Shown here one piece after another: positions 9,296 through 41,166 of a DNA stretch of 64,000 bases. The notes below the pieces were generated by a model. It was not told the DNA's origin, did no database searches, and worked only from the letters and a program-made list of their open reading frames with translations. The stretch is from Pavona decussata (taxonomy: Eukaryota). Position numbers and translations under genes: made by a program. Where the stretch lies: assembly GCA_977016875.1 (NCBI GenBank), contig CDRNST010000006.1, forward strand, positions 6,758,001 through 6,822,000. Reading direction: 5' to 3'. Every line of letters starts with the position of its first letter. Position 1 is the first letter of the stretch.

Positions 9296-11597
9296 GTGAA
9301 GTGGCAGCGGTGATAATTATTTATAACAAAATAGATTGTTAGAAGCATTAAAATTGTTTCAAACCTTGGATTAACTAAATGTTTTTGAAAGTGGTCTTCA
9401 ACTTGGTGTCGAAAGTATTGTTTGTTCTGGTTGTGCCTTGCTACGATTTGTGATTGGCTAAAGTAACTCGACCACTAATTCAACCAGTTATAAGGAAAAC
9501 CAAACTTGAAGCTATCGTGGCTTGCTCGCGCGCGTTTTCCCGCGCGTGGCTTAGTTACATGTGCTGTTTGTGTCTGTTGTGATTGGCCAGAGCGCATCGA
9601 TAACTTTAGTTTTGGTGCTGCATTACACTGTTGAAAACCACTGAACAGTAAGGACACCGCATTAGATTTCAACCCGCACACGACTGTTCCTCTTTTTCCG
9701 TAGGATATTAACTGTCAAATGTAAAGATCGTTTTACAAGTATAGTTTTCAGTTATAAGGAGTGGGTGATCAAAAAGGGAGTGGTGGAATCGGAGAAAACT
9801 GGAATAAAAAAAGGATACGGAAAGAATGGAAAGTTCCCCAAAATTCTGAATGTAAACCCCTCCGAAAATAACCCCAGCCCAAGAAGGGCCTCAAATCTCT
9901 ATTATCTTCCATGATAAACCCAACAGACCAGAATTGAGACCATGGACTTTATTAGCTTTTTGTTTTGGGCTGTTAGTTCGTGTTTGACGCTAATTTAAAT
10001 TCTTCTCATTGTCAAGCCGGAAAATGCTCTCCAATATTAAGCGCCCCGCCAACAAGCCAAACGTGAACGAGAGTCCTTTCAACGAATAAAGACCAGGGCT
10101 CATATTGAGAATTTTACGATGGTTGCGGAAACAACTTTTGGTCCTTAAATTTGAACATAAAAAATTTGTGTTGATTTTAGTGAGGAGTTAGGGCGCTGTT
10201 GGTCCTTCCTTAGATACGCCACTGGCCAGTTCTATATGAGGGACATTTCACAAGTAACAATTCTGTGATAAATAATATTCATTTGACTGTTGTCCGGTAG
10301 AAACAAGTTTTCATTCGTCACTCGTATTTTCCAATCTTTTTCTTTCTTTCTTTTTATCACTCTTTTTCGTTCCACTCAACATGATCGATTTCACACGATC
10401 TGAGAAGATTAACAAAATCTTTATTAATGTATTACTGAGAGACTACATAATTTCGTATCTTTATCATCTACGGATCACAGTTTGTTCTAAATCAAGTTCG
10501 GGGTGAAATGCTGCGACCCCGTTTAACACGCTGTTACATCTGTGAACGCATCAGAGATGAGCTCCCAACCACCACTGGGTGGTAGGTTGACTTCCCTGTG
10601 TGCAGCGGAACTTTGGGTTGATGTATTCATAGTAGCCAAAGCTGTCTTCCCAACTCACTGAACCCGCCTTTGGCCTAAACTGACAGGTAGCGTATGTACT
10701 GTCAGTATGCAGGAAGTAGCCGTTAGCACCCTGCCAAAAAGGTACCGTTTGGTGGATCCCGATGTGTCCGCGGATGTTGATGTATTCAACTTTCTTGCAT
10801 TTGTTGTTGTCAAGGTAATCGATGACGTTGAAGTCCTTGAAGCTTCCACGAACGTAATCTCTGAAATCGACGCCGTGGGTCGGGTAGCTGCATGTTGCTC
10901 GCCAGTGAGTGGAGTGACTCTGTAGGGACTTCATTCGTGCCAAACTCAGGCGGTACAGATTCCAGTTCTGTGCGTTCTCGTTCACTGGAGAGTTGTACTT
11001 GAAAGGAATCTTTTGAAAAGCGGGCATGTTACGATTTAGAGTACTCCAGGATATGATTAGGTTCCAGGCAGTGCCAGGCTCGGACTTGAGATCACAGTAA
11101 GCCGGGTAACTGTTTCCGCCATTATCGCAAAGCCTGTAGACACCACATTTTGAGGCTCCTCTCAGCAGATAATCAAGGCAGGAGGTTGGACGGAAGAGTT
11201 TTCGTTCATTTTAGTTGATTTAGGACAATCGTCTCCCTAGAAAAAACAAAACAAAACAAAACAAAAACAAAACAAAGAATTAAAATCGTTGACCTTTTTG
11301 GCACGAAAAATATCGCAATATTGTCCACGACTCCAGTAATGTACAGATCAGTTCAAACATTGGCATTGTGAGGAGCGAATTCAGGGACCAGCGTGGTCGA
11401 CCGGATTTTCTTGTTGCAATTGATCTGATTTTAATCTTTCCCGGTTTCAAGATAGTTTGAAATCCTGATCGTATTTTTATTTATTTATTTTTTTTACTAA
11501 AATATCTTAAAAAGCGACTGCAATTACAAAAATAGATAGACTTGGGAGCTTTTACTCGGCAAGAAAACCTCGAAACTTAAATATCTGTGTGAATTAA

Positions 11598-12205
11598 GAG
11601 TGGCCGTCTGTAATTTTCAACTAATGTGTTTTGGGTGCGAAAAAATAAAATTCGTCAAACTTTCTCAGAAGAAAGGACTAGATAAGTAATTCACATTTAT
11701 GTAACTTTCAGGTCAATCAAATAAATATTTTAGCTGCAGGACTAATATTTCGGTTTTTCAGCTCTCAGAAAGCACTCAGAGCTCCGTCAGAGCTACTTCC
11801 TACATATCGGTAACACCTGGGTTTGGATATAAAACGTAACTAAAACTAAACGCCAAGTTGGAACTCGAAATCAGAAGATATTAATGATTAATTCAGGACG
11901 GTTATTTCCAATTGTAATAAAAAGCTGAATATTTTACCGATTTTTTAACTTTTCTCTTTTGTGAGCCATTTCGGCAGGTACAAAAATCGGCTAAATTCAA
12001 ATGAAAATATCGCCAATGGTACATTACTAGACTTCATAAAAGTACACCCCAGTTAAAGAGCAACGTCTTCCCTTCAAATGTTTGCAATAAAATTTTGGGG
12101 CCAACGTAACTACGAAATTTGACAGTTGAAATTACAAAGTGCCCTTTTGTAAACAAACGCAATCTTTAATTAGCTCAACAACGACGAGTCAATGCCATAC
12201 GAAGG
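11598..12205 (+). repeat. Left terminal inverted repeat (~600 bp)
   Basis: Aligns by eye with the reverse complement of 18555-19607 once the solo LTR 18623-19069 is removed. Imperfect, with scattered mismatches. Confidence 0.9.
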
Positions 12206-12670
12206 CGCTTTACTTTAGCGCTAAACTAGCTAAGGATGCTTTTTACAAGATCAACTGTTATAAATGTGCGCCAGACTCGGAAGGAAGTTGAATAACAATA
12301 CTGTACAATTAAATGAGTGATTTATCATTCAGAAGCGGACATATCACAAATGTCTCGCAAAAGGTAGATAGCATGCTGCTCTTCCCAAAAGGCTGAAAAG
12401 GAGACAATAAAATTTGCATACATTATTTCACCAATTATCGAATGAAAAAATGAATTTGATTCGGAATCGTTTCCAGATGGATATGACCTGAAAGTTATCT
12501 TATGGCTCTTTTAAAATGATCGAATTGCTAATGATTCGAATTTGACAACTGTTCACAGAATCCCAAGAAAAACCACCGTAAATCATTTTTTCCGAAGAAC
12601 AACCATTGTTTTACTTTCACTCGACCCTACAAATAAATTCGTGAACAATTCAACATGAATTGAAACTTGT

Positions 12671-13710
12671 TCACTTTAATGTTTGTAGGGCCATATCGTA
12701 CACCGTCGCTTGTCCCTCTGGTTGGGAATCCCGACATTTTAAAAGATTCCAAAGGCTCTGACGATATCTTTCATTCAGAAGAAAATAAATGCATGGATTA
12801 AGCGATGCGTTGGAGTAAAATATGAACTTGACTGCAAAGTTTAAATGGTCTATTCCACAAGGAATTTTTTCGTGCCACCAAAAAAGGTGTAACAATCCAG
12901 TGATATCTATAGGAAGTATACACATAACAAATAAAACTATGATGGCCAGAATTTTCTTAATGATCTTAGTGTCTTCTTTTCGCCTTTGTCTTCTGAATGA
13001 GGACACTGTTTTCCAAAATGATCTCTGTTTTATTATAGACCTGAACATAAAACCGTAATGACTGCCAAGGGGATGGCAATTAAGATAACTGATATCGCCA
13101 CGAAGTAGATTCTTTGAGCTTTTAGACTGTCAAACGCGGGTTCCCAGCTGAAGATGCAGTATCGTATGTTATTGACTTGTTTGAGACGCACTGTGTTAAG
13201 GTAAGTGCTGTGTAGACCCATAGATACTAACCATATTAGTGGAATAAGGACTCGTCTCCGTCTTGGTGTTATGACGGGGTCTCGATATGGCTGAACCACT
13301 CCAGCATACCCATCTACAGTGATGAGCAAGATACTTTGAATCGATACAGCGGTGGAAATGTCTTGGAAGAAATAAACAAGTTTGCATAGAATGACTCCAG
13401 CAGCCTCGTCAATCAGCCATCTTTGCACGCCGGTGAAGATTTGCGTGAGCTCTCGCGGAACGGCGAATGCCGATACCATTAAATCTGAGATGGTCATATT
13501 TGCGATTAGCAAGTTGGTACTTGTTTGCATATGTTTGTATCTGGCAACGATGGCGATGAGTGCAGAATTTCCGACCAGTGAAATCAGCATAATGATAGAG
13601 TAACAAGCTGCTTTGACCACTTTTATATCCATAGGCTCTTCTTTTGTGAATGGCATGCATTTAACTCCAGTTGAGTCTGGGTTCGTTGAATTGTCAAGCG
13701 AATCATCCAT
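12671..13710 (-). pseudogene. Class A GPCR, neuropeptide-receptor-like (RFamide/QRFP/NPFF-type), frameshifted
   Basis: ORF 13033-13710 has TM1-5 (GN, NLLIANMTISD, CKLV, DRY altered to DGY). ORF 12671-13048 has TM6-7 (FVMCILP, NASLNPCIY). A frameshift near 13045 separates them. Confidence 0.88.
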
Positions 13711-14283
13711 GGTACTACTCCAACAGCATTAAACGGAGCTATCGAGTTGACTTTCCTAGAACTGAAATAAAGAAAATGTTGTTTAACGAGAAGCATGCAA
13801 GTCTGTGTATTAAGAAATCTTTCAAAAACTCATTAATAATTCGTAAGCCCATTGACCAAATGGTCGATAAAACGTCACGTGCAGTGGTTTTAAAACCCGA
13901 TAAAACCTCCTCCTTATTAGTATGGTTTTTCTCGTATGCTATTATTACACAATGTCTTATTGTCTAGTTAACGATCACTCAGCTTTTTTATTCATTAACA
14001 AGCCGACATGAATGAATTGCAAGCACACCATACTGGATGAACAAATTAGCACGTACTTAGCTATAATTGGATTATAGTCCTTTTACAGAAGACCACAATA
14101 GTTAAAAACGAACAACAATAAAAGAGATGCCAAAAGCTGGTCTGCGAATACATGTATTCAAAAGTAAATTGTTTTCACAACAAGTTTCCAGCATTGTCAG
14201 CGTCCTTCTAAAATCTAAACGAACCCAGAGTCGGTAAGCTTCGCTCTCGTTACACTCAACTATTCGGCTCGTTGTTGCTACAG

Positions 14284-15126
14284 CTAGGCCTGTTTGTTCA
14301 GTTGTAAACCTTCTGTGGTAGATGCCCAAACGATTTCCGCTTTCACACCAGTCCATCCATTTACTGTTATTATTATGATGGAAACTAAAAAGGGAACATA
14401 ACAAACAACCAATGCCAACTGCACCCACGCTATGCTAGAAACCGTCTTCTCGTATTTTCCGATATTCTGTGGGGTCATTCCTTGCTGATTTTGGCGGTCT
14501 TGCACCTTAGCTTGGTGTTGCTGTAATGTGAGGATTATCTTCGTGTAACAGAATATTGAGATAGATAAAAGGACGACTGAAAACACAACTGCTGTTGCGA
14601 AGATGATAGGTAACAAATTGATCCAGAAGAAGTAAATAAATCCAACTGATATCCCAGCTAGCCAAATACAAACAGTGAGTGCACGAGTTCGCTTCAGTGT
14701 TACGACGTTTTTGTATCTGAGTCCCAATTTCAGGGCGAGAAGCCTGTCAACACTGATGGCAGTCGAGGTCACAACTGACGTTCCGCAAAGAACAAAACTT
14801 GAACCATTATTTATTTGAATAATCTGTTGAATGAAGTTGAAGTTGATCTTTATGCCGCCAGCATTCAGCAGGAGGATGACAGAGAACGGTTGTGATACGA
14901 GACCAATAAAAAGATCAGTTGCTGCGAGGCATGGAAGTAACAGTTTTGTTGGTGGATGAATAGCAGATGCTTTGTGAAGAGCAATAAGGATCAAGCCATT
15001 ACCCAGAGACGCAATGATGGAAAGAAAAACGTTCAAAGTAGCGTAAGATACAGCTACTATTGCTGGAATTATGTTTGCCTGTCTCAGCGTGTTCGTAAAG
15101 TTCCTATTTTCAGTCCAGTTCGCCAT
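14284..15126 (-). pseudogene. Class A GPCR, cnidarian adenosine/melanocortin-receptor-like type, truncated before TM7
   Basis: MANWTENRNFT..., LGNGLILIAL, LAATDLFIGLVSQP, AISVDRLLAL, LVVCYVPF. Homology stops at ~14315 (WASTT) and there is no NPxxY. Confidence 0.85.
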
Positions 15127-15630
15127 TTTTGGCTGTTTCCTAAACGGCTTCAAATCAGAAAACGCAGTTCCTTCACTGAGAAACGAACTGGATTTTAATG
15201 AGACCAGTCGTTCTTTAATTTTTTGTTAGATGTAGTGTCCTTCAGGTTACAAGCCAGCTTTCGAGGTGACTACACTGCCAAAACAAAGTTTCACCTGCGT
15301 ACTTTCTTAAATATACCCATTTTAACCTGTCAGCTGTTTCAACAGCGCGTCTGTGAGTCTGTAGGTTATCGCAATTAAAATGTGGGCATTCATTGGGCAC
15401 AGTTTGGCAGTATTTATGTAGCCACATTACGTTTTTTTCAATTGGCAACATTCACGCGGTCATAAATTAAAAAATTCTAAATATACGTAAACAGCAATAA
15501 TTTTTTCAGCGAGATTGTTGTTGTTATTTAACACTCCAAAATATTTCCACCCTTCGGCTCTGGTAGTTCGTCCGGCAAGAAGAGCGCTGCGACTCAAATA
15601 ACAGCTGCATTCGCCATTTTTTAGTGCCGC

Positions 15631-15820
15631 AATAGGCCCTTTTCATGATGACGTCATTTGACTACAATTACCAGAATTCATTTCGTTTTCCTTTTCAAAT
15701 TCAAATTTTGTAATCCCTGTGGACAGCAAAGCACAATGGCTCTAATTAGCACGAGAAAACAAAAACCTGAAGGATTCTGGTAGTTGTAGTCAAATGACGC
15801 CATAGTGAAAATGTCCTATT
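15631..15820. mobile_element. 190-bp MITE
   Basis: TIRs AATAGGCCCTTTTCATGATGACGTCATTTGACTACAA / TTGTAGTCAAATGACGCCATAGTGAAAATGTCCTATT. A second family member lies at 50013-50202. Confidence 0.85.
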
Positions 15821-15822
15821 GT

Positions 15823-15887
15823 CAAACTCGTTCCCAGGGCCCTGTCTTTTCCTCCCTCGAAGAGAGAGGAACCTGGGAACAAGGTTG
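15823..15887. mobile_element. Short palindromic MITE
   Basis: CAAACTCGTTCCCAGG ... CCTGGGAACAAGGTTG inverted ends. Confidence 0.6.
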
Positions 15888-16997
15888 TGTTATTATTTTT
15901 ATTGGCATAAGATATTAGCAAGACCAGTTGCCCTTTTTAAAAAAGTGTAGCTAGCTTAAGAATAATGCGAACAACACGACAAACAGAAAACTGAAATAAA
16001 AGAAGCCGTCAGTCACAGCAAATTTACTTCCTCTCACCTCACAGAATGTGGTGTTAGTCGCGGGATAGCGCAGAGATACCAACAAATCTTTTGGAGATCT
16101 CTTCTCTTTCCCGCCTAAATTTTCTCTCGTCTTTCCCCCCACTTTCCCGGCAAATCGACCCATTTTCTGTGCTTTCTGTCTGAACGTTATAAGGGTCGGG
16201 GGAAAGATAGACAAAAGTGGATCTAGGAGCCGTACCATAAATTAGAAGAAACGAAATTTTGTGGATTTAAAGAAAAAGTGGATTTTATATGGGAGATTTC
16301 AGGGTGAGCAGTACCCTGGACCGGCAGATAATTTCCGTGTCGGTAGACTCCCGGATAATCCGAGACCGTCGACATATATGATAACGGCAACAGATTAGTT
16401 GAGGATAAGTTCGTCTCACGGATTTGTCAGCCTCAGTAATGTCTAATATGAATCAGGGACTACCACCGTTCATTTTTCGATGGATATCTGTTCGGATGGC
16501 CTTTATCGGCTAAAAAAATTGGAATTATTCGTAAAGGAAATCTACAGTTTATTTGCCAAAATGTGAAATCAAAATTTCGTAACACTTTGAACAAAACTAA
16601 TTCCTTTCGTTTTCAAAGGGGAAAGTATGTCTTTAAAAATGCGAAAAAAAAAAAAAAAAGGGGGGGGGGGGGGGAGGCAACTAACTAGCATTTTTGTATA
16701 GCCATTTTTGTATAGCGAACAACAAGTTGTATATTCGAGGACATAGAACTTTCTGCAACTTACATTTTCAGCTAAAGGATCCGAACAGAAACAAACGTGT
16801 CCTTAAAAGGGTATAAAACGATCTGGGAACAAAGGAGACAACAATTTAAGTATTTTGCTTAAATGTTCTCGTTCTCGTTCATTTCTTACGCATACTTCGT
16901 GTAAATTTACAAAGAAAACATCCTTCAGTTCGATTATTAAAAGCCTGATAAAGTAGTTTATGTAAAAAGATTACGAAGATTGAGTTACTGACAGTTA

Positions 16998-17850
16998 GGC
17001 CCGTTTCATACGTCGAACTTTACATTAGCCGAACTTAATACCTATTAAGGTCGACCAAAATAATTAAGTTCGGCAGTTGATTCAGACGTCGAACCTAACT
17101 GAAGTCGAACTTAAAGCTAAAGTGAGAAAGTAGATTTTCGTGGTCAGCGGCTGTTGTTTTTTTCTCAACAAGATTCAAAATGGCGGGAAAGATGAATTCT
17201 GACATGGAAGAGCTTGTTTGGTAAAATGGCATTGGGGGTGGTCAATTGTTTATTTTAGTATTAGTTGTTATTGATATTTCTTATAATTCTTTATAGTTAT
17301 TATATTTAAAATTTTTAAATTCACGTAAAGCGCTTTTGATCATTTTAATGTTAAAAGGCACTATATTAAGTGAATAAATGTTGTTTTTGAAGATTTGTTC
17401 GGAGAAATCTTGACGCTTTGCCTTTGATATAGCCTGTATTGGAAAGTTTCTGTCGGTTTGAAGTGCGTGTGCACATCAAGAATAGATTCTTTTCTTTTTT
17501 TTTAATCTTTCGCATCTCAGACAAGTATATTTAGTTGTTTCTAAACAAGAAGAACAAGCGCATTCCTCTTTTCCCGCCATCTTGTTCAGGATGAAGTCCT
17601 TTGTGCATGTCAAGTCAATGGAACGCGCAGACCTCTGGGATAGATATAATTTATATAATTTATACGTAACGTATGCATTTGATTCGGCACACGTAAATGT
17701 TCGACGTATGAATCGAAGTCGAACTTAAGAACGGCGGGTCGACCCAAATACAAATCTGTCGATCCTAACTGATTCATACGTCGATCTTTACTTGCGCCAA
17801 ACCAAATAATTAGGCTCGGCCCATGTAAAGTTCAACGTATGAACCGGGCC
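16998..17850. mobile_element. PIF/Harbinger-like MITE
   Basis: GGCCCGTTTCATACGTCGAACTTTACAT ... ATGTAAAGTTCAACGTATGAACCGGGCC, flanked by TTA / TCA. Many internal GTCGAAC repeats. Confidence 0.7.
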
Positions 17851-18242
17851 TCAGACGCCGAACTTTTCATGAGCCGAACCTAATACCTCGAATTAAGTAC
17901 ATGAAAAGTTCGGCGTCTGAATCAGTTGAAAACGGCTGTTTCAATTTGGAACGACCCAGCCGTTCTTCCCGCCTGGCTCAGCCGGGAATTTTGGCTTTGG
18001 AACGGCTTTGATTCAGACGCCGAACTTTTCATGAGCTGAACCTAATGCATAAATTATTATAACGTATTTCAAATAAAAAAGATAAAAAAAAAAAAAAAAC
18101 GCTGACCTTTCGATTGGTTTTGCTTCAAGTAAATTAAGTTCGGCTAATTAAGTTCGGCGTCTGAATCAAAAGGCGGGATTTTCGTGATTTAGGCCGACCT
18201 TAATTTGAATTAAGTTCGGCTGATGAAAATTTCGGCGTCTGA
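17851..18242. mobile_element. Related palindromic MITE abutting the previous one
   Basis: TCAGACGCCGAACTTTTCATGAGCCGAAC ... GTTCGGCTGATGAAAATTTCGGCGTCTGA, with internal copies of the same motif. Confidence 0.65.
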
Positions 18243-18554
18243 GCGTTTCACAGTTCCTCACCATCTGGCCTTAAAAGTACCATCCACTGCAAAGGTAAGT
18301 TTCTTGTAGATAGCCTTTGGCTCACGTATGGAATAGAAGTCGAAAATTTTTCCATTTAAATTGTTGTTGAAGCGCGGAATTTGCTTATCAGTGTGACAAT
18401 TAAACAATACTTTTTCAAAACTTGTCTTGTTTCTTTCAAAATTCGCGGATGATTAATCCAAAATATGTTTTTAATCCACAAAAAATATAACAGGAAGCAA
18501 AATATTTTGTTCACTTCGGGTATTTCATGACACGAGGGGATTTTAGATTGTTAT

Positions 18555-19607
18555 CCTCGGTATGTCATTAACCTGTCGTCGTTGAGCTATTTGAAAATTT
18601 AGTGTTTGTTTTCAAAAGTGCATATAGGCGAATAATCCAAGGATGGCCCACGGTTCCAACTCGTCTTTATTACAGTTAATACGAATTACGATTACGATTG
18701 CTAAAAGCGAAACAAAATACAAATTACTAAGGAATACAAATGATGGTTATGAAACGACGAAAATACAGGAAACGGAAAGAAACTAAGCGAAAATACTTAC
18801 AAACGTTGTGTGACTTGAAAGTTGAACGGAAAAAATGTACGATGGCTAACAAGACTGGACGAAAGAAACTGCAACGATGTTGCCGCGAACGCTGAAGCGA
18901 AATGAATTAGAATAAACGATGAAACTTACAAAATGATCTAAGAACAAAGAAAATTATGCAGAGAAATCTAACAGAATGAACAGCGATAACTGAAAAGAAT
19001 GTGAAAGGAATGTGCAACCATACAAAGAACTAAATGCTAAACATATTGACGTGGAATGCGGCCGTAACAGTGCACTTTGTAATTTCAACTGTCAATTTTC
19101 GTAGGTACGTTGGCCCCAAAATTTATTGCAAATATTTGAAGGGAAGACGTTGCTCTTTAACTGGGGTGTACTTTTATGAAATCTAGTAACGTACCATTGG
19201 CGATATTTTCATTTGAATTTAGCGGATTTTTGTACCTAACAAAATGGCTCACAAAAGAGACAAGTTAAAAAATCGATAAAATATTCAGCTTTTTATTACA
19301 ATTGGAAATAACCGTCCTGAATTAATCTTAAATGTCATCTGATTTCGAGTTCTACCTTGTCGTTTAGTTTTAGTTACGTTTCATTTCCAAACCCAGGTGT
19401 TACCGATCTGTAGTAAAATGATCCCTGAGTTCCTGCCGAGAGGTGAACAACCAAATTATTTGTCCTACAGCTAAAATATTTATTTGATTCACCCAAAAGT
19501 TATATCAATGTAAATCACTTACCTAGTCCTTTGTTTTGAGAAAGTTTGAGGAATTTTATTTTTTCTCACCCAAAACACATTAGTTTGAAAATTACAGACG
19601 GCCACTC
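18555..19607 (-). repeat. Right terminal inverted repeat, interrupted by a solo LTR
   Basis: Reverse complement of 11598-12205. The match resumes on both sides of 18623-19069. Confidence 0.88.
18623..19069 (-). mobile_element. Solo LTR (447 bp) with 5-bp TSD
   Basis: GTGCA is duplicated at 18618-18622 and 19070-19074. The minus strand starts TGTTACGGCCGCATTC and has AATAAA near its 3' end; the terminal CA appears mutated to TA. Removing it restores the TIR. Confidence 0.75.
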
Positions 19608-22600
19608 TTAATTATTTTCAGTATTTTACCTTGCATCCCAGTGTAAGAACTCTTTTGTGCCGTCTGTGCTCAGCAACTGCTGCAAGTGCCTAGAAGATGA
19701 AGAAAGATTTGAAAATTAGACGGTTGAAGAGTGGAGATCATATTCTTGTAGACAAAATATGTCACGGGCCGGATTTTGTCCATCGAATAACTGCGATCCT
19801 GAGATTCCTGTGGTTTCGTAAACGGTTTGAGTAGTTATAATAATTATATTTCTTGGACATGTGGCCTTACTAACTTTCTATCGCAGACAAAACACTTACG
19901 AAAAGAGTGATGCCAATAAAAGCCGCGATTATCTTAAATGTCATCTTTAGTTTTCCTCGAAATACCGTTTTGAATTTAGTTCGAAGAAAGAAAAAGGGTT
20001 TGGAAACCGCTTCTGCTGACCGCAAGTATCTCCTCAACAAGCGAGCAGTCCAGGCTGTTATTTTACGTAGAACCAAAACATATCAGATAAATAAATTGAA
20101 AACACGGGAACGTGTTCCCCTGAACATGTTTTGTGGATTAGACAAAGGAAGCAAAATTTTTTTACTGTGACAACTTGATGTCAACATGTTTGCCATTTTC
20201 ATTTTTCTTACATGGTTCGTTTGTAGAGCAGTGCACGGCAAGCAAGCTGTGAAGTCTGGGATCATTCATTTATCCAAGAGACAACTCTAAAAGTTATTTT
20301 TGTTCTTGTTGACTGTTGTAGATAGCTTTCTCCTATTGATTTTGAGGTCTTTGTTTTGCGATGTAAAACTGAATGCATTATTTCTGAGTCGGAGCAAACA
20401 ATAAATTTAGGTTGACAGTTCAGATGGATTCCTCAGTTTCTCTTCATACTGAGAGACATAGATTGCCCTCTTTTTCTGCTCCGCAGCAGAAACGAAACCT
20501 CTGTCTTCAGTTTCAGGGTAGTTCCCATTACATAAGAAAAGAGATACGCTGCTACCAGTCGTATGTCCATATACTTACGATTCACCCGCTATAATTTGTC
20601 AAAGTCAATTTGGTGAGTTCTTGTACAGCCAGTCACTCTAAGGTTGTGAATGTTTACAGAATGAATTGTTTAGTTGTATATGTACACTGTACGTAATATT
20701 TACTATATATTCTAATTTTGGAAATTTTTTAGTAAAATTTTCAAATATTACAACTTACGATTCCACACCTCATTAAGATCATGCCGTATTTTTACATTTT
20801 TCATGTTGAGTTCAGTCAGTTGTTTGCGGAATCAGTCAGTTCGGATTGTTTACATTATATGTAACAAGTATTAATCAAGGATTAGTAAAGTGCGTTCGAT
20901 CTGTCTTATCTCTGCTAAAATTATAGGGTTCTTTATTGTTTTGAATAAGCCAGAAACTCGTTAGCAAAAGTGGAGTTCAGGAAGGAGGTTATCGAGAATT
21001 ACCATGAATGAAACTTTGTTCTGGTACAATGCAATAAACTCAGTCTGAATGTAGCAAAATTCCACACAATCAGTGATTTGAGGAATCAGCGTTCTGATTG
21101 TTTACATAAAACATAACAATTTCTTACCTGGGGACTTTTTGGCAGTAAAATTAAGGAATAAAGTAAGTCTGCATGCTGGAATATTGAGAACTGCGCTTGT
21201 GTTAAGTTTGTCCGAATCAACGAACCCACGAGCCCCATTCGCATGGGAGATGAACATGTATTTAGGAATACGACGCAAATTATTTCGGTGCGAATCAATT
21301 TTTTGCCGGGATATTCAAACTCTGTAAACAAAAGAAATTTTTGCCAAAAGCTTTGGCTGATCAAATTTAAGATTTCTAAGCTCTAAAAAAGTCTTAACAT
21401 CAACTTTAGAGTTTTCCTAATATTTCTCTAAATTGATGTAGCGTGGACCGTTATAGACGAATGCCCGATGGAAACCAAAAATCGCGAATGTCAGCTTTCC
21501 ACCAAACCTTTATTTCTAAGCTTTGATTAGAGAATCTTTTACCAAGTACCTTATAAATATTCTGGGTTTAAATATCTGAAATCATTCTTACAGGAACTAA
21601 TTGTCATCGGATTCATATACAAAGTCTGCATTTTGCGCCATATTTGCCAAAATGGCGTACAGGCAAAAAAGATTTCTTCTTCCCCTCTCAGGTGCATTTG
21701 GAATGCGAAAAGATCGCTGACCAATCCCACAAGCTTTTTTTAGGATTGGTAGGCAAGTCTGTAGCATTATGATACAGATGGATGACTGATAAAACGTTCG
21801 GTTGTTGAAGTCAATCGACTGTTTGCATGTTTTCGTGAGAAACTGTTCCCACTATTTAGTTCAGTTCAGTGCAAGCGATTCGCGAATCCATATTGTCAGA
21901 ATGCCTCACTTGTGTAATCAAAACATCCCTATCTTGTAAAACTCAACCGAGTTACACCTTCAAACACGAAATATATATCTAAAATACTTTTTTGTGAGCA
22001 CAAAGATGAGAAATGGTTATATGCATGAACACTAAATAAAGCGTGTCTTGTATGGTCACTGAATTTAAATGGCGATTTTATAATTACCTCATTATACGCC
22101 TCGCAGTCAACATTCGCCTATTCAATTCTCAAACATTCATGTCTGTGAAAGCCGACGTGTTTTTTGTTGTTGTTGTTGTTGAACAACATAATTTAGGCAC
22201 ATATTGTACGTAACATCGTTGTACGGAATTTCTAAGGCTAGGAAAGATTTGATCTTCCACGTTCATCTTAGGGCCTTAATATTATTTATCTTGTCATGAG
22301 AATTCTCCGAAGAAAATCAAACGCATGACCTTCCGCATACCAAGTTGGTAAAGTGGGTCAGGGAGTCGGTAGGAGATTTTAGCGATTACATGGAATGGCG
22401 ACACAGTGATTCAGCGACCGAGGGCACACAGTTGTTCCATATGATCGATAGCTTATTTTTATTATAACCGACAGAAAAACCAGGCTTAATGTTCTCGCTG
22501 CTTGTGTTCTGGACACTCGATGAAATTTCGAATTTACAAACACGCGTTTCAGGTCGCTCCTTCTAAGATGACTGAATTGGCATCACAAAACTGATAAAGC

Positions 22601-33376: not shown

Positions 33377-33975
33377 CGTGTTTTATGAGCTCATACGGAT
33401 AGATTCATAAGTATGAATATTTTCTCTTCATATGTAGGCCTAATGTTAGTGCATCGTATGACCCTCGTTTCTTTTCGATTGTTTCTTAAAAATTTGGCAA
33501 CTTACGAAAATTTTTTGGGCAAATGGTTCACCGCCCCCCCTGGCAAAAAATTGCCCGTACGCCTATGTCTGTAGACGCCACATTTTGAGGCTCCTCTCAG
33601 CAGATAATCCAGGCAGGAGGTTGGACGGAAGAGTTTTCGCTGGATTTTAGTTGATTTAGGACAATCGTCTCCCTAGAAAAAGAAAAAGCAATAAAGAATT
33701 AAAATTATCGACTTTAGTCTGGCACGAAAAATATCGCAACATTCTCCACGACACCAGAAATGTACATATACCAAACATTCGGACTGCCGGTGAGGAGCGA
33801 AATATTCGCGAGCGCGGCATTCGGGAATCAACCCAGTCGACCTGAACTTCTTATTGCTAAAAATTCGGTTGTAATTGCTTTGATTTCCATCTTTTACGTT
33901 TTGAAGATCGTTTGAACTCTCGATCACGACTTTTTCTTATAAAATTTCTTCAGCCCGTCAATGTGAGTGAAATTG

Positions 33976-34181
33976 TGTTAGGTATAGGAACTATAAGTAC
34001 GCGCCTCTCAAGGGACTGGACACGAGATGTGTCGTCAAGACGACAAGTGACGTAAGGAGAAGCCATGTGCGTGCTCGAGAAGCAAAAAGACTCGCGTTGT
34101 GAAAATGAGTTGTGAAACCGTATTTTAATATCGTAAATACTCTTGGAAAACAACAAACAGTGTGGATTTTCTTGTGTAACA
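33976..34181 (+). repeat. 5' LTR
   Basis: TGTTAGGTATAGG...GTGTAACA. One mismatch seen versus the 3' LTR (AACAACAAAC vs AACACCAAAC). Confidence 0.97.
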
Positions 34182-34184
34182 TTC

Positions 34185-34201
34185 TGGGGGCCTGTCCGGG
34201 A
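34185..34201 (+). promoter_or_regulatory. Primer-binding site (tRNA-Pro-like)
   Basis: TGGGGGCCTGTCCGGGA lies 3 nt after the LTR and resembles the Pro PBS TGGGGGCTCGTCCGGGA. Confidence 0.75.
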
Positions 34202-34489
34202 GATTTTTCTCGAAGAAACTTGATGGAAATGTACCCGTTTTGACGATCGATTGCTCACTGTGTGCGAGGACTCGCGTTTGTCGCCGCCATTACGCATTCA
34301 CTTTGGATTTCAATGGACAACGATTTATTAACAGGATTTAACTGGTTGTAGTTGAAGCGGACATTTGGTGTGGACAGTTTGGCAAAAGATAGTGGAGCCT
34401 GAATTTGAGGCCAGGGAAGGTAGGAACATTGTTTTATTGGACTTTGTGCATGTGGAAATCTGTTCGTGTTGTTTACAAGTAAAATCGAA

Positions 34490-35887
34490 ATGGCGGAGGA
34501 ACAACTGATTCTTCTGGATCGCAAAATTTTGTCGCTGGACCTGAGTGCGTTATGTGAATTTGCTCTTCATGCAAAAGTTGAAAAGTCGGCAGTAGAAGGC
34601 AAGGGGATATTAAGTGTTATTCGGTCTATCAGACGAAATATTGAGGATTCATTCGAGAAGTTGTCTGGCGATGATCAAATTGAATTTGTTGAGGGGTTAA
34701 TTGCACAGTTGGGTCCACCACCACTCGAGGGGATAGAAGATCAATACGGCCAAGAAGAATTGGAAGGCAAGGGCGACCTGAAGAAGCTAAAAATAGAATT
34801 GGGTGATTTAGGGTCTAAGCAGCAATTAGTCGAGGAGCAATTGGCCAAAATGCAGAAAGAAAAGTTTCCTGACTCAGTGAAAGACGAAGACACGATCAAG
34901 TTTCCTGCCAAGGGGGTTGCGCAAAGCATATTCCGCAGGGATTTCAAAATACAAGGAGTGGTGGGTGACCCTGGTCAGAAAGATAAACTGGGTTATCAAG
35001 CTCTAATATCCCAAATAGAATCAGGGCTTGCCAAGGGGTACTCAGACAAAGAAGTAGTTAGTGCCGTTGTTCGTGCTGTGCAGCCAGGCCTGCAACTAAG
35101 AAGCTACCTAGAGAACATGACTGACCTAATCCTACCCAGGCTGCGTAAAATTCTTCGCTTCCATTTTCATGAGAAAAATGCCACAGAACTTTACCAGCTT
35201 CTAACAAACATTGCCCAGCAACCCAATGAAGACCCTCAGTCATTTCTGATGAGAGCACTCACTATTAGGCAAAAGGTAATTAGTGCTTCAAAAGAGTCCG
35301 ATAGTGGGGTTAAGTACGATGCCTCCTCGGTGCAAAGTTTGTTCCTGCATGCCTTGGAAACCGGTCTTGCTGACGAAACCATTCGTGCAAAGATAAGACC
35401 ACTCACTCAGAACCCAACAGTCGCAGATGAAGACCTCATTGGAGTAATGAGCCTAGCTATATCTGCAGAAGCCGAGCGAAGTAATAAGTTCAGTTTTACC
35501 AGCAAGGGAAAGTCTGCAAAGGTTCTCACCGTTGAAGGTGCAGTGGAAGCAAAAACGAAAAAGGAGTCGCAGAAGGACTCACAGGTCCTAGCAACACTAA
35601 AAGCTGTACAAGCGGAGCTGGCCACAGTGAAATCAGAAGTTAAAACTCTTCGTGACGTATCAAATAACCAGAAGGCAGACACCATGGCACCTAGTCCAAC
35701 TGGGAGGGGAGCGAGGGCTGGAGCAAGACCACCTGGTTGCCAAGAGTGTAGAATGAATAGGGAAGGTGACCGATGTCCACATTGCTATCTCTGTGGAGGC
35801 TTGAACCATATTGCCCGCTACTGTCAAACCAGGCTCAGAAGCTATCCGGGAAACGCATCCAGGCTACCCCCGCGGGACAGGGAGTAG
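34490..35887 (+). CDS. gag: Gag with C-terminal CCHC zinc knuckle
   Basis: Open ~465-aa ORF from ATG 34490, containing FKIQGVVGDPGQKDKL and CYLCGGLNHIARYC. Confidence 0.9.
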   Translation: MAEEQLILLDRKILSLDLSALCEFALHAKVEKSAVEGKGILSVIRSIRRNIEDSFEKLSGDDQIEFVEGLIAQLGPPPLEGIEDQYGQEELEGKGDLKKLKIELGDLGSKQQLVEEQLAKMQKEKFPDSVKDEDTIKFPAKGVAQSIFRRDFKIQGVVGDPGQKDKLGYQALISQIESGLAKGYSDKEVVSAVVRAVQPGLQLRSYLENMTDLILPRLRKILRFHFHEKNATELYQLLTNIAQQPNEDPQSFLMRALTIRQKVISASKESDSGVKYDASSVQSLFLHALETGLADETIRAKIRPLTQNPTVADEDLIGVMSLAISAEAERSNKFSFTSKGKSAKVLTVEGAVEAKTKKESQKDSQVLATLKAVQAELATVKSEVKTLRDVSNNQKADTMAPSPTGRGARAGARPPGCQECRMNREGDRCPHCYLCGGLNHIARYCQTRLRSYPGNASRLPPRDRE

Positions 35888-35890
35888 CCT
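35848..35890 (+). promoter_or_regulatory. -1 programmed ribosomal frameshift signal
   Basis: G_GGA_AAC in the gag frame, a 6-nt spacer, then the hairpin AGGCTAC...GTAGCCT. pol is in the -1 frame. Confidence 0.8.
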
Positions 35891-38800
35891 TGCCAGAGAA
35901 AGAGAAGTCCCACCAGTGTAGTGGTTGCCTGGAGTTTGATTGCCGTAAACAGTTGCTACAGTGTTCAGCCTGCCAGTCTGTTCGATATTGTTCTGAGCAT
36001 TGTCAAAAGGTTCATTGGCCAAAACATTAAGTGTTATGCAAAGCAATCAAAGAGCTCTCTGAGAGAGAATTTTCTAAAGAAAAGGGGTTAGGAGATGCAC
36101 AAGATAGAGATGTGTACAGTAGTCATACCACTCCCAGGCAACAGGAGCGCATAGTTAGGCTGGTGGGAAGGAAGTGTCTAGTGGATTGTTACCTGGAGGA
36201 TAAGCCTACAGACGTTTTATGGGACACAGGAGCCCAAGTATCAATTGTTTCAGAAGATTTCCTGCAGAGCCAACTACCAACAGTTCAAACAAGGGATATT
36301 AAACAATTACTTGGGACAGATGGGTCCATAAGTTTGCAAGCAGCAAATGGAACAGATATCCCTTACTGTGGGTGGGTAGAGATTGGTGTGAGGTTGACAA
36401 ATGGAAACGAGACAGAGATAAGGGTTCCATTTTTGGTAACAAAGGAGAACATTGAGCAGCCCGTCATTGGTTTTAATGTTATAGAGTTGATGGTCAGAAA
36501 CACTGAAGATAATGAAGATGATGTGTTGCTGGAACGGATGTTGAGAAGCTTCAAAGTGAGTAAAAGTGGTGACCTGCAAGCATTGATAAGCCTAATTCGT
36601 ACTACTAACTCTGGTGAACTCTGTCTAGTTAAATCCACAAAGAAGCCACACACTGTCCCTGCAGGAGAGACTGTTCACTTACCTTGCCGTGCTAATACTG
36701 GACCAATCCACCGTAAGACTCCTGTCATTTTTGAGCCAGACGAGTTGGCTACCTGGTCTTCGGGATTGGCAGTACATGAATCCCTTACCACCGTAAAGGA
36801 GGGCGATGCAACCATCTTCTCAGTCCCAGTGACCAACAACACAAACCATGACATCACTTTACCTGGAAGAGTTGTCCTGGGACGCCTTCATCTTGTCCGG
36901 TCAGTGACTCCTGTCGAAGTCAGGTTTAAACATCCTGAGACACCAACCCCATGTGCTGGATCGTTTTGTAAACAACATACATCTGCTGAGCAAATTGAGA
37001 GAAACTTGTCTTGGTTACCTGAAGTTGATTTGAGTGGATTATCAGCAGAACAAAAGGAGCATGCGAAACAGTTGTTGGTTGAAGAAGCAGATGTATTTGT
37101 GACAAGTGATGATGACGTCGGCTGCATTTCCGAGTTGGAGATGGATATCAGGTTGACTAGTGACCAACCAGTACAGAAGAACTACATTTCCATACCCCGT
37201 CCACTCTATCCCGAAGTTAAAGGTTACATTGAGGACTTGCTTAACCGTGGTTTCATTCGGAAGTCCAGATCTCCATTCTCAAGAAGTGTTGTCTGTGTTC
37301 GTGAAAAAGATGGTGAGATGAGGTTGTGAATAGATTACAGAGAATCGAATAAGAAAACAGTGCCAGATCGGCATCCCATCCCTCGGATCCAGGAAGCCTT
37401 AGATAGTCTCGGGGGCAAATCATGGTTCAGTGTTTTGGATCAGGGAAAAGCGTACCATCAGGGATTCATTGGAGAGAAAAGTCAACCGTTGACTGCGTTT
37501 GTTACGCCCTGGGGATTATACGAATGGGTGCGTATACCATTCGGACTCATGAATGCTCCAGCAAATTTTCAAAGATTTATGGAGAACTGTCTTGGGCAGC
37601 TGCGTGATGAGATATGCATCCCTTACTTGGACGATGTAATTGTATTCTCGGGAACATTTTCTGAACATATTGAGCATCTGCGTAAAGTTCTTCGTCGGTT
37701 GAAGAGTTATGGTGTGAAGCTTAAGCCCAGAAAGTGTAACTTGTTCAAGCGGGAAGTGTCCTTCCTTGGAAGAGTGATTTCTCAAGACGGGTATCGGATA
37801 GATCCGAAAGCTACAAATGCAGTGACTGCGATGAAGGATTTAAAGCCGCAAACAGTTGGAGAAGTTAGAAGAATTACGGGCCTACTTGGAGTTTACCGCC
37901 GTCACATCAAAAACTTTGCACAAACAGCAAAACCCATTTATGATCTCCTCAATCATGACCTACCAAAGAAAAAGAATACTAACCCAATCAGACAGAACCC
38001 AAGGCTGCGCAGTGGACAGTTACCATCTTCATCACCAGTAGAGTGGGGACCCAGTCAACAGTCAGCATTGGATGTCCTGATAGACAAAATAACTTCACCC
38101 CCTTTGCTGGCATATCCAGATTATGATGCACCTTTTATTGTACACACCGATGCGTCACAGGATGGCTTGGGGGCTGTCTTGTACCAAAAGCAGAATGGTA
38201 CTACCCGAGTAATTGCATATGCATCCAGGACTCTGACCCCATGTGAACAAAATTACCACATGCATTCTGGCAAGCTGGAATTTTTAGCCTTGAAATGGTC
38301 AGTGACAGAACAATTCAGGGACTATCTCTACTACGCTCCTGAATTTGTAGTATACACGGACAACAACCCCTTAACTTATGTGTTAACATCTGCCAAGCTA
38401 AACGCCACAGGATTGAGATGGGTCGGAGAGCTTGCTGACTTTAACTTCGAAATACGGTACCGACCAGGCAAGTTGAATGTTGATGCAGATAGTCTTTCCC
38501 GATTACCCAGTGACTTCAAGACCTACATGGACAGTTGTACTGAAAAGGTAACCCCTGAAAGCTTGCACGCCTCAGCCCAAGTGTTATCAAGTGGTGACAA
38601 TGTCTGGATTGCAGCACTGACTGATAAAGAAGAGGAGCTCCATGTTGACCCTCTGTCCCAAGCATCTGGTAACCAAGTAAGAGTGGTGGATTTAGTGAAA
38701 GCACAGAATGAAGACCCTTACATTGGGCGTGTCCTTAAATTGATCAAAGCAAAACACAAACCGACAGTTGCAGAAAAGCACTCAGAATCACCTTTGGTTC

Positions 38801-40631
38801 GTAAGTTACTGAATGAGTGGCATAAACTTCACGTGAACAGAAAGAGTGGAGTACTTTATCGTAACCAGCAGGTTGTTCTTCCACAGAAATTTCGTCGCAC
38901 CGTTTATCGCGAACTCCATGAAGAGATGGGCCACCTTGGTGTTGAGAGGGTACTAGCTCTAGCCCGTGAGAGATTTTATTGGCCACACATGAGGAGAGAC
39001 ATTGAAAACTTTATCCATCACACGTGCCGCTGCCTGAAACAAAGACGCCCAAATCTACCAACGAGAGAACCATTACAACCAATTCTAACAACCGCTCCTC
39101 TTCAGATGGTTTCTATCGACTTTGTACATCTCGAGCGAAGCTCAGGGGGCCATGAATATATCCTAGTTGTTGTTGACCATTTCAACAAATATGCACAAGC
39201 GTACCCGACGAGAAATAAAACTGCTGTTACTGCTGCAGACAAGATCTTCAATGATTTCATCCCACGCTTTGGTTTCCCAGAGAAACTCCACCACGATATG
39301 GGGGGCGAATTTGAGAACCGGTTGTTCAAAAGGCTGGAGGAACTCTCTGGAGTAATGCATTCGAGAACGACTCCGTACCGTCCACAGGGGAATGGTCTGG
39401 TGGAAAGAATGAACCGTACACTTCTCAGCATGCTGCGTACCCTACCGGAAACCCACAAGTCTTGCTGGAAGGACCATATTAACAAACTCATTCACGCATA
39501 TAACTGCACTGTTCACGAGTCAACCGGTTATTCTCCATTTTTCCTGTTATTTGGTCGCAGCCCTCGTCTGCCAATCGATGTAATCGTTGACCTCGAGGTG
39601 GAGACAGGAGCCAAATCACATGCTGAGTATGTTACCAAATGGAAATCTGCCATGCAAGAAGCTTACTCACTCGCATCACAATCTGCCAGGAAGAATGCCA
39701 TGAGGGGAAAAAAAATTATGACAAACGAGTGCGATCATCAGCACTGCAAGTGGGAGACCGTGTCCTTGTACGCAACCTTACTCCTCGTGGCGGGCCTGGC
39801 AAGCTCCGCGCTTTCTGGGAAGACCAAATCCATATAGTTGTTGCAAGAAAAGGGGAGGGAAGCCCGGTGTACGACGTGAGACCAGAATCAAGCCAACGAC
39901 CCACCCGCACTCTACATCGAAACCTCTTACTCCCTTGTGATTATTTACCAGGCAAACCCTGGGAGGACCTCCCTCCCGTAAAGAAGACGAAAACAGCAGC
40001 ACCCTATCATTGTGATGATGTCCAACCACTGGTACAAGAAGGGAACGAAAGTGACAGTGAAGATGAATTTCCAGACGTTTCATGCTTGAATCTTTCACCA
40101 GGACACGATGGAAATGACCGAACACAGATACAGCTAGAGTCTACAAGTAAAGACGAGCCAGAACCAGATTTCACGGATGTTCATTCTGGTGAGGTGTCAA
40201 GTGAAATGGGGCCGGAAGCTAACATTGCTGGTACTCCTGGCGAAGCACAGCTAACACGAGACTCTCAAGCAGTCGATGGAGAGAGGGACGAGCGAGAGGA
40301 TGTTAGCAAATCAGACCGACCTCAACGTCTTAGACAGGCACCTAAACGGTTTACTTATGACAGTCCTGGGGAACCAACTTATGTGCGACAGGTTAAGGTT
40401 GATCCATATGTAGGAATACAGCAGGGTGGGATACCAACACTGCCAACGCCCTACATACCTGAATTCCCAGTGAACCAGTACTGTACGTTGTCACCAGCCT
40501 GTAACTATATTTCTCCACCAGAACCGCCCATGTTTTGGAACATGAATATGATGATGCCTTGTATGCCCTATCCAATGGTACCACAGTTGCCACAATGGGG
40601 AGCACCTTATCAGTCATTTCAGTGCAGATGA
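35848..40631 (+). pseudogene. pol: Pol polyprotein (MYND finger, protease, RT, RNase H, integrase), disabled
   Basis: LWDTGAQVS protease; YLDD RT; DAS and YTDNNPL RNase H; HHCC plus DDE integrase. In-frame TAA at 36028-36030, TGA at 37327-37329 and a frameshift at the A-run ~39708-39715. Confidence 0.93.
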
Positions 40632-40951
40632 GCAGATAAACAGTTTTTGTCTATCACATTGTTTAAAAAAAAAAATCGAGTTTTCTTAAGTGTATTCAAT
40701 TCTGACATTCATTCTGTGAATGCTGTAGGAACTGTCTGAAGATGGTCATTGTGCTACAGAATCTTGAACACTAGTTTGGACAGATGAACTGAGAGATGTT
40801 ACGTGGCCTGTAAGGAGCTGGGCCTGATCAACCCACTCCAGGATTTAAGAAGCAAGGAATCCTAAACAAAAAAGGCCACTTTCGTAAAGTTTTGTTCTGT
40901 ATTGCATGCCAAATGTTGTCAAATGTCACGGATGACATTTCTTTTCAAGTT

Positions 40952-40960
40952 AGGGGAGAG
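40952..40960 (+). promoter_or_regulatory. Polypurine tract
   Basis: AGGGGAGAG immediately before the 3' LTR. Confidence 0.8.
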
Positions 40961-41166
40961 TGTTAGGTATAGGAACTATAAGTACGCGCCTCTCAAGGGA
41001 CTGGACACGAGATGTGTCGTCAAGACGACAAGTGACGTAAGGAGAAGCCATGTGCGTGCTCGAGAAGCAAAAAGACTCGCGTTGTGAAAATGAGTTGTGA
41101 AACCGTATTTTAATATCGTAAATACTCTTGGAAAACACCAAACAGTGTGGATTTTCTTGTGTAACA
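40961..41166 (+). repeat. 3' LTR
   Basis: Direct repeat of 33976-34181, followed by TSD ATTG. Confidence 0.97.

Follow-up and report, generated by a model that had tools for sequence, protein, structure and literature searches.

A probable single-copy Pack-TIR in the coral Pavona decussata, enclosing two receptor pseudogenes from one tandem array

Pack-TIRs are the animal counterpart of the plant Pack-MULEs (PMC8277862). In total, 370 of them were found in 100 genomes, 98.6% being single-copy, and the length of their cargo had a median of 224 bp (Tan et al. 2021, Nat Commun 12:4280; PMC8277862). In that survey, 87% of the carriers were hAT or Tc/mariner, the captures were ascribed mainly to transposition-independent gap filling, and cnidarians are not named in the main text (PMC8277862). 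Here, we describe an 8-kb element with terminal inverted repeats (TIRs) at positions 11598-19607 of a 64,000-nucleotide stretch of the coral Pavona decussata (the window, G000:C6:6758001-6822000 of a 602-Mb genome; coordinates given without a contig are window positions). This element is most probably a single-copy Pack-TIR, the interior of which was replaced through template switching or gap repair by a contiguous 4.8-kb copy of a unit from a G protein-coupled receptor (GPCR) gene array on contig C20.

Like a Pack-TIR, the element has TIR ends enclosing duplicated host DNA with a parent locus elsewhere, it is single-copy, and it shows a short junction filler of the kind that repair by template switching or gap filling should leave. 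In contrast to the published median of 224 bp, its ~4.8-kb cargo holds two near-complete genes and intergenic DNA; the host is a coral, and the carrier belongs to a TTAA-specific family whereas most described carriers are hAT or Tc/mariner. The sequence comparison points to gene capture of a known kind, in which the cargo is unusually large and the superfamily of the carrier uncertain. At this locus, a coral TIR transposon has captured host sequence at the DNA level, and donor locus, breakpoints and subsequent decay can all be seen; the cargo is ~20 times the typical animal Pack-TIR cargo and includes two whole genes.

The element and its captured array unit

The element is flanked by TTAA, has GAG...CTC ends and carries inverted arms of ~550-600 bp, the segments 11614-12148 and 19066-19590 being complementary at 85-93%. 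At the left end, TTAA (11594-11597) is followed by GAGTGGCCGTCTG... from 11598; at the right end, ...CAGACGGCCACTC runs up to 19607 and is followed by TTAA (19608-19611). On both strands the ends read TTAA|GAGTGGCCGTCTGTAATTTTCAA..., and the termini, GAGTGGCC...GGCCACTC (GA...TC), are of the RR...YY type. The left arm (11598-12205) shows 89-93% identity to either end of 10 other full copies and to a 9.1-kb copy, L063. No transposase was found in this copy. A sequence-only reading of the window had described a TTAA-flanked, non-autonomous element with GA...TC ends, long TIRs and no visible transposase, and its exact ends and arms were confirmed here. The features of the locus, with the strand where one applies, are as follows (MITE, miniature inverted-repeat transposable element; LTR, long terminal repeat; TM7, transmembrane helix 7).

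11594..11597: left TTAA target-site duplication, adjoining the element start
11598..12205, plus strand: left terminal arm (TIR), beginning with GAGTGGCCGTCTG; inner edge ~20 bp short of the family TIR
12206..12209: filler CGCT, 3-4 nt, between transposon and cargo, from a three-way comparison of element, family and array
12210..16992, plus strand: cargo, one contiguous array-unit copy, colinear with units at C20:4.068-4.346 Mb
12671..13710, minus strand: GPCR1 pseudogene, peptide-receptor-like rhodopsin GPCR (7tm_1), frameshifted by a 10-bp deletion and with DGY for DRY
13819..13924: very high-copy small repeat of ~106 bp upstream of GPCR1, seen as a depth spike and skip joints
14284..15126, minus strand: GPCR2 pseudogene, TM7 and C-terminus missing (7tm_1, E 2e-21)
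15634..15817: 184-bp hairpin MITE in the cargo, not in array units and private to the cargo
16997..17851: 855-bp MITE-like repeat with 43-bp TIRs, adjoining the cargo end; many copies of 93-96% genome-wide
17851..18242: 392-bp high-copy MITE, adjoining the resumed transposon sequence; dozens of copies of 95-96%
18243..18622, plus strand: residual internal sequence and inner edge of the right arm, 86-91% to L032:3994-4381 and L063:8378-8770
18623..19065: nested solo LTR of ~445 bp, with a 5-6-bp duplication (GTGCA)
19066..19607, minus strand: right terminal arm (TIR), terminating in ...CAGACGGCCACTC
19608..19611: right TTAA target-site duplication

More than 20 array units match the cargo (12210-16992, ~4.8 kb) colinearly, at 83-94%. 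All array matches to the element start at 12210 and none extends beyond 16992, and the order GPCR1 region, GPCR2 region, tail is common to the cargo and the units. High-identity matches elsewhere in the genome were confined to C20:4,068,302-4,346,434; a distant GPCR1 paralog (72%) lies on C95. Since the cargo is colinear with units of one array, both GPCRs came together, as DNA, from one locus; the DNA-level origin is indicated by what accompanies the genes, namely sequence on the promoter side, intergenic DNA and small embedded repeats. The ~106-bp repeat at 13819-13924 is colinear in the array units and matches the flanks of unrelated loci. Thus, capture of host-derived GPCR sequence at the DNA level, as had been proposed from the sequence alone, is borne out, whereas the accompanying claim of two source loci is not: a single colinear piece of one array, in which the two genes are neighbours, accounts for both.

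The C20 locus is a ~280-kb tandem array (C20:4068302-4346434) of more than 20 units, its genes being by turns a peptide-receptor-like GPCR and a second GPCR of the rhodopsin type. Many units are intact and some broken, and between some of them retroelement open reading frames (ORFs) are inserted. Intact, intronless parents of both genes are present there without TIRs, namely a 349-aa GPCR1 with DRY and a 314/315-aa GPCR2 with NPxxY. The termini of the 8-kb element therefore enclose host sequence with parents in an array that lacks TIRs, which is what defines a Pack-TIR. Family termini were absent from the whole of C20 in a genome-wide search with a 27-nt terminal pattern and were not seen in ~80 kb of sampled array. 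When the cargo was compared with ten array units in the GPCR1 region, identities were 92.5-94.8%, against 91.6-98.3% among the units themselves, and a tree of this region placed the cargo among the array units. The parent GPCR family grew by local tandem duplication without TIRs. Further TTAA-flanked copies of the chimera, which with distinct target-site duplications would be a sign of mobilisation, were not found in the genome, the combination of cargo and TIRs occurring at this locus only. The cargo was also considered as exactly one array period, as from a circular intermediate; this was rejected, since a unit is longer than the cargo and array sequence continues upstream of 12210.

At the left junction, AAGG|CGC(T)|TTACTTTAGC, family sequence is followed by 3-4 nt of filler and then by array sequence. 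Such filler would be the mark of end-joining after template switching.

GPCR1 is near-complete with one frameshift and DGY in place of DRY, in agreement with the sequence-only reading. Its break is a 10-bp deletion at positions 663-672 of the coding sequence, as compared with intact paralogs. The ORF at 13033-13710(-) matches Pfam 7tm_1 over profile positions 1-172 (E 1e-26) and the overlapping ORF at 12671-13048(-) over positions 178-260 (E 2e-11). The named relatives of GPCR1 are QRFP-, neuromedin-U- and tachykinin-receptor-like proteins of scleractinian corals. Substitutions unique to the cargo GPCR1 comprise 21 non-synonymous versus 2 synonymous changes, which suggests relaxed constraint. 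The GPCR2 ORF (14284-15153(-), ATG at 15126) ends ahead of the TM7 NPxxY motif and lacks the last ~130 nt. The earlier description of GPCR2 as cut off before TM7 thus stands, except that the cut is not a capture boundary: the loss of TM7 is due to an internal deletion in the cargo, 265 bp of the array units being missing at 14318-14322. Judged from these lesions, both captured genes are dead, and they show no sign of function or spread. It had been suggested that such elements help to spread GPCR repertoires. This one gives no support to a TIR-driven expansion: it is single-copy, the captured copies are pseudogenes, and the parents expanded by tandem duplication without TIRs.

The carrier family and its transposase

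The left arm gave 407 candidate matches in the genome. A search for the family termini with the 27-nt pattern, TTAA included, returned 34 forward and 34 reverse hits (68), compared with 0 for the reversed pattern used as a control. All 68 adjoin TTAA or a 1-mismatch variant, a count which is not independent evidence because TTAA is part of the search pattern. The family thus has ~34 copies, the termini of which pair into elements of 2.8, 4.4, 5.4, 5.8, 8.1 and 9.0-9.1 kb; 10 full copies were read. With this family the 8-kb element shares only 11598-12205, 18243-18622 and 19066-19607. In the common 4.4-kb form, ORFs do not exceed 125 aa; it is an internal deletion of L063 (2622-7246) that keeps part of the last ORF. 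L063 (G000:C209:1023213-1032307) has four minus-strand ORFs, and the region missing in the 4.4-kb form is present in four copies, which are the transposase-bearing members of the family:

C209:1023213-1032307 (L063)
C287:2066292-2075314
C62:3464645-3473664
C26:372367-377722

The 5.4-kb subfamily (at least 8 copies) carries an extra 864-bp insert. This was rejected as a second gene capture: it is the remnant of a nested non-autonomous hAT element (Dimer_Tnp_hAT, E 1e-10) with its own 16-bp TIRs, CAGGGGCGTAACCAGG, and a 5-bp duplication, TACCT. It lies at L034:3003-3866 (G000:C129), and the same insert is found in L035-L038. The copy number of this hAT-carrying subfamily shows that the family transposes while carrying foreign DNA. 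Two family copies of 8.1-8.2 kb (C156:87684-95856 and C156:237988-246099) have neither the transposase region nor the GPCR cargo, and on C26 family termini pair at 27.6 kb.

The L063 transposase was analysed as single ORFs, not as a spliced protein. For its 351-aa ORF, 897 homologues were found, all of them devoid of Pfam domains and one being an uncharacterised Exaiptasia protein. They occur in cnidarians, arthropods and molluscs, a widespread animal family without a Pfam model. Pfam scans of the four L063 ORFs and of 39 homologues gave no meaningful match, and in a protein atlas the family protein matched unnamed clusters only, in addition to DUF7869 at 12%. In an alignment of the 39 homologues, three aspartates, spaced 84 and 41 residues apart, are invariant or almost so: D124 (DWAMKF), D208 (QDNAGCY) and D249 (GGKGPCDRKA). 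A conserved Cys/His motif lies N-terminal to this D-D-D core. The AlphaFold (AF2) model of the ORF (mean predicted local distance difference test score, pLDDT, 86.8) shows a compact RNase H fold without an insertion domain. Its best matches among solved structures are retroviral integrase cores (Foldseek E 2e-5; VIA-align Z 11.6, root-mean-square deviation 2.7 A over 133 residues), model residues ~102-288 aligning unbroken to integrase 51-185. Mos1, IstA and Ty3 integrase come next, and Hermes (hAT) reaches only Z 7.3. In the secondary structure of the model, D124 would be part of the first core strand, strand 202-208 would end with D208, and helix 247-264 would begin around D249. We infer that D249 is the third catalytic residue, E265 being an alternative.

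These features bear on the superfamily. Kolobok elements are characterised by TTAA 4-bp duplications and 5'-RR...YY-3' termini (Kapitonov & Jurka 2007 via PMC9587614). Their transposases are grouped with those of hAT, P and MuDR, and have a DDE triad with a C/DxxH motif. The 8-kb element shares the TTAA-specific duplications and the GA...TC termini; in contrast, the family core is compact and integrase-like, with invariant D124, D208 and D249 and no insertion domain, and the Kolobok alignment motifs ETDRQYN, TTDADG, DPPH and AESMNH were not seen in the family transposase. A search for motif strings in the Kolobok paper's supplement gave no match. Therefore, we did not file the family under Kolobok, and its membership there appears doubtful on the modelled core. 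Of the sequence-only assignment to Kolobok, the duplications and the ends hold and the transposase of the 9-kb copies speaks against it; transposase-bearing relatives with the same termini, a check proposed there, do exist, in four copies, with a core that is not of the Kolobok type. For annotation, this means that TTAA and RR..YY ends are insufficient to call an element Kolobok, because the family's own transposase has a different architecture.

Sola elements have a DDD transposase, 4-bp duplications, lengths of 2-9 kb and TIRs of 11-1124 bp (Bao et al. 2009 via PMC10741241). The 9.1-kb copy, with TIRs of ~625 bp, a TTAA 4-bp duplication and three invariant aspartates as a putative DDD triad, resembles this description, and the family is probably Sola-like, a better fit than Kolobok in a comparison made with Sola by its published description only. 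A TTAA preference of the Sola group was not found in the literature searched, which gives only a '4-bp TSD' (target-site duplication) and does not include the original Sola descriptions. piggyBac, with which the family shares the TTAA target duplication, was rejected: there is no Pfam DDE_Tnp_1_7 match, the termini are GAG...CTC and not CCC...GGG, and the core has no insertion domain.

Origin of the chimera

The 8-kb element is most probably a deletion derivative of the TTAA-targeting family. Measured against the canonical 4.4-kb interior, ~2.9 kb has given way to the cargo; measured against the 9.1-kb copy, it is ~7.6 kb. In the course of events that we favour, a double-strand break or gap inside the element would have set off repair, and repair synthesis would have switched template onto the C20 array. 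The left end would have been sealed by end-joining, leaving the filler behind. The cargo decayed afterwards, through the deletion and the DGY change in GPCR1, the deletion in GPCR2 and repeat insertions, and the chimeric element never amplified. We lean towards a capture in place, in the C6 intron, over a capture elsewhere followed by one transposition, because the former is the usual route for single-copy animal Pack-TIRs and because neither a sister copy nor family ends on C20 were found. The less probable order, which still deserves real weight, is that the capture took place first, in or near the C20 array (e.g. by fork stalling and template switching), and that the transposase then integrated the product at a TTAA on C6, in which case the GPCRs truly travelled as cargo. 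The complete terminal arms and perfect TTAA duplications argue for this order, as do the family's ability to move with a foreign insert (the hAT subfamily), the existence of four transposase-bearing copies and the location of source and element on different contigs; it has to be set against the single chimeric copy, the lack of any family terminus on C20, including the ~80 kb of sampled array, and the truncation of the left arm at its inner edge. It is rather unlikely that the chimera was mobile as such, that is, that a TTAA/GAG-ended family with a compact integrase-like DDD transposase, possibly of a lineage not yet classified, moved two complete intronless GPCRs and their intergenic DNA from the C20 array to another chromosome. 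If true, DNA transposons that transduplicate whole genes would be an effective means of spreading GPCRs in cnidarian genomes. Two independent captures by a Kolobok element from two unrelated loci, feeding GPCR family expansion, would agree with the two genes being of unrelated subfamilies on the same strand and with the TTAA and RR..YY hallmarks (PMC9587614). We consider this extremely improbable, since single units of one array match both genes, the spacer and the flanking DNA in colinear order, both genes are pseudogenes in a single-copy element, and the transposase core of the family is not Kolobok-like.

Several observations weigh against a capture by template switching as favoured above. 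The data show no order of events between capture and insertion, and the exact donor unit was not found, the closest array unit being 94.8% identical. On the right side, the cargo boundary is a MITE end and the transposon resumes exactly at the end of the second MITE; simple gap filling leaves this coincidence of both boundaries with MITE ends unaccounted for, and a more complex rearrangement may have taken place. In addition, none of the public contig pieces listed (11300-17299) bridged a junction. This last point, together with the repetitive nature of both transposon and array, would also fit a misjoin of array sequence between two transposon halves in the assembly. Such an artefact is very improbable in view of the window, which contains 0 Ns, and of the cargo, which differs by 5-8% from every sampled array unit and carries private lesions. 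Among the public short contigs (four runs from three studies, placed on 11300-17299), X1 (16337-16617) and X5 (15862-16055), error-free and originating in two other studies, correspond to sequence specific to the cargo. A 197-kb contig from the European Nucleotide Archive ('82x' in its name) is identical over 20,678 bp and gives weak support, because it was probably built from the same data. Parts of the window are present in public runs labelled "coral metagenome".

The insertion site and nested repeats

The flanks of the 8-kb element belong to a gene unit that is repeated in tandem. In the paralogs at ~840, 48620 and 54805 the left and right flanks adjoin each other; a fourth paralog also lacks the element, its flanks lying ~7.4 kb apart around an unrelated LTR retrotransposon. 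The absence of the element from four paralogous introns, noted from the sequence alone, was thus recovered, with three contiguous flanks. An exact TTAA was not found at the homologous point of any paralog, because the element-bearing copy has ~12 extra bases there, and the empty site is therefore only approximate. An intronic position fits the sequence, given the conserved minus-strand ...GGGATGCAAG|GTAAAATAC ~20 bp from the right end of the element and a 219-aa open frame at 10554-11210. The host gene and the GPCR pseudogenes share a strand. The intron of gene copy 3 holds a ~7.2-kb LTR retrotransposon (33975-41166), which is very young since its LTRs (33975-34181 and 40960-41166) are 100% identical.

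Later insertions in the element comprise three small repeats, of which one MITE is in the cargo and two MITE-like ones lie next to it, and, in the right arm, a solo LTR. The segment 18623-19065 was called an LTR because its relatives (at least 40 copies, 90-96%) include many same-strand pairs ~6.8 kb apart, the pattern of LTR pairs. One copy of the 392-bp MITE is nested inside family copy L031. The 855-bp and 392-bp repeats are related, with similar TIRs, and lie back to back. In the tail of the cargo, a run of ~16 A followed by ~15 G lies within 16630-16665, where public contigs appear to be cut.

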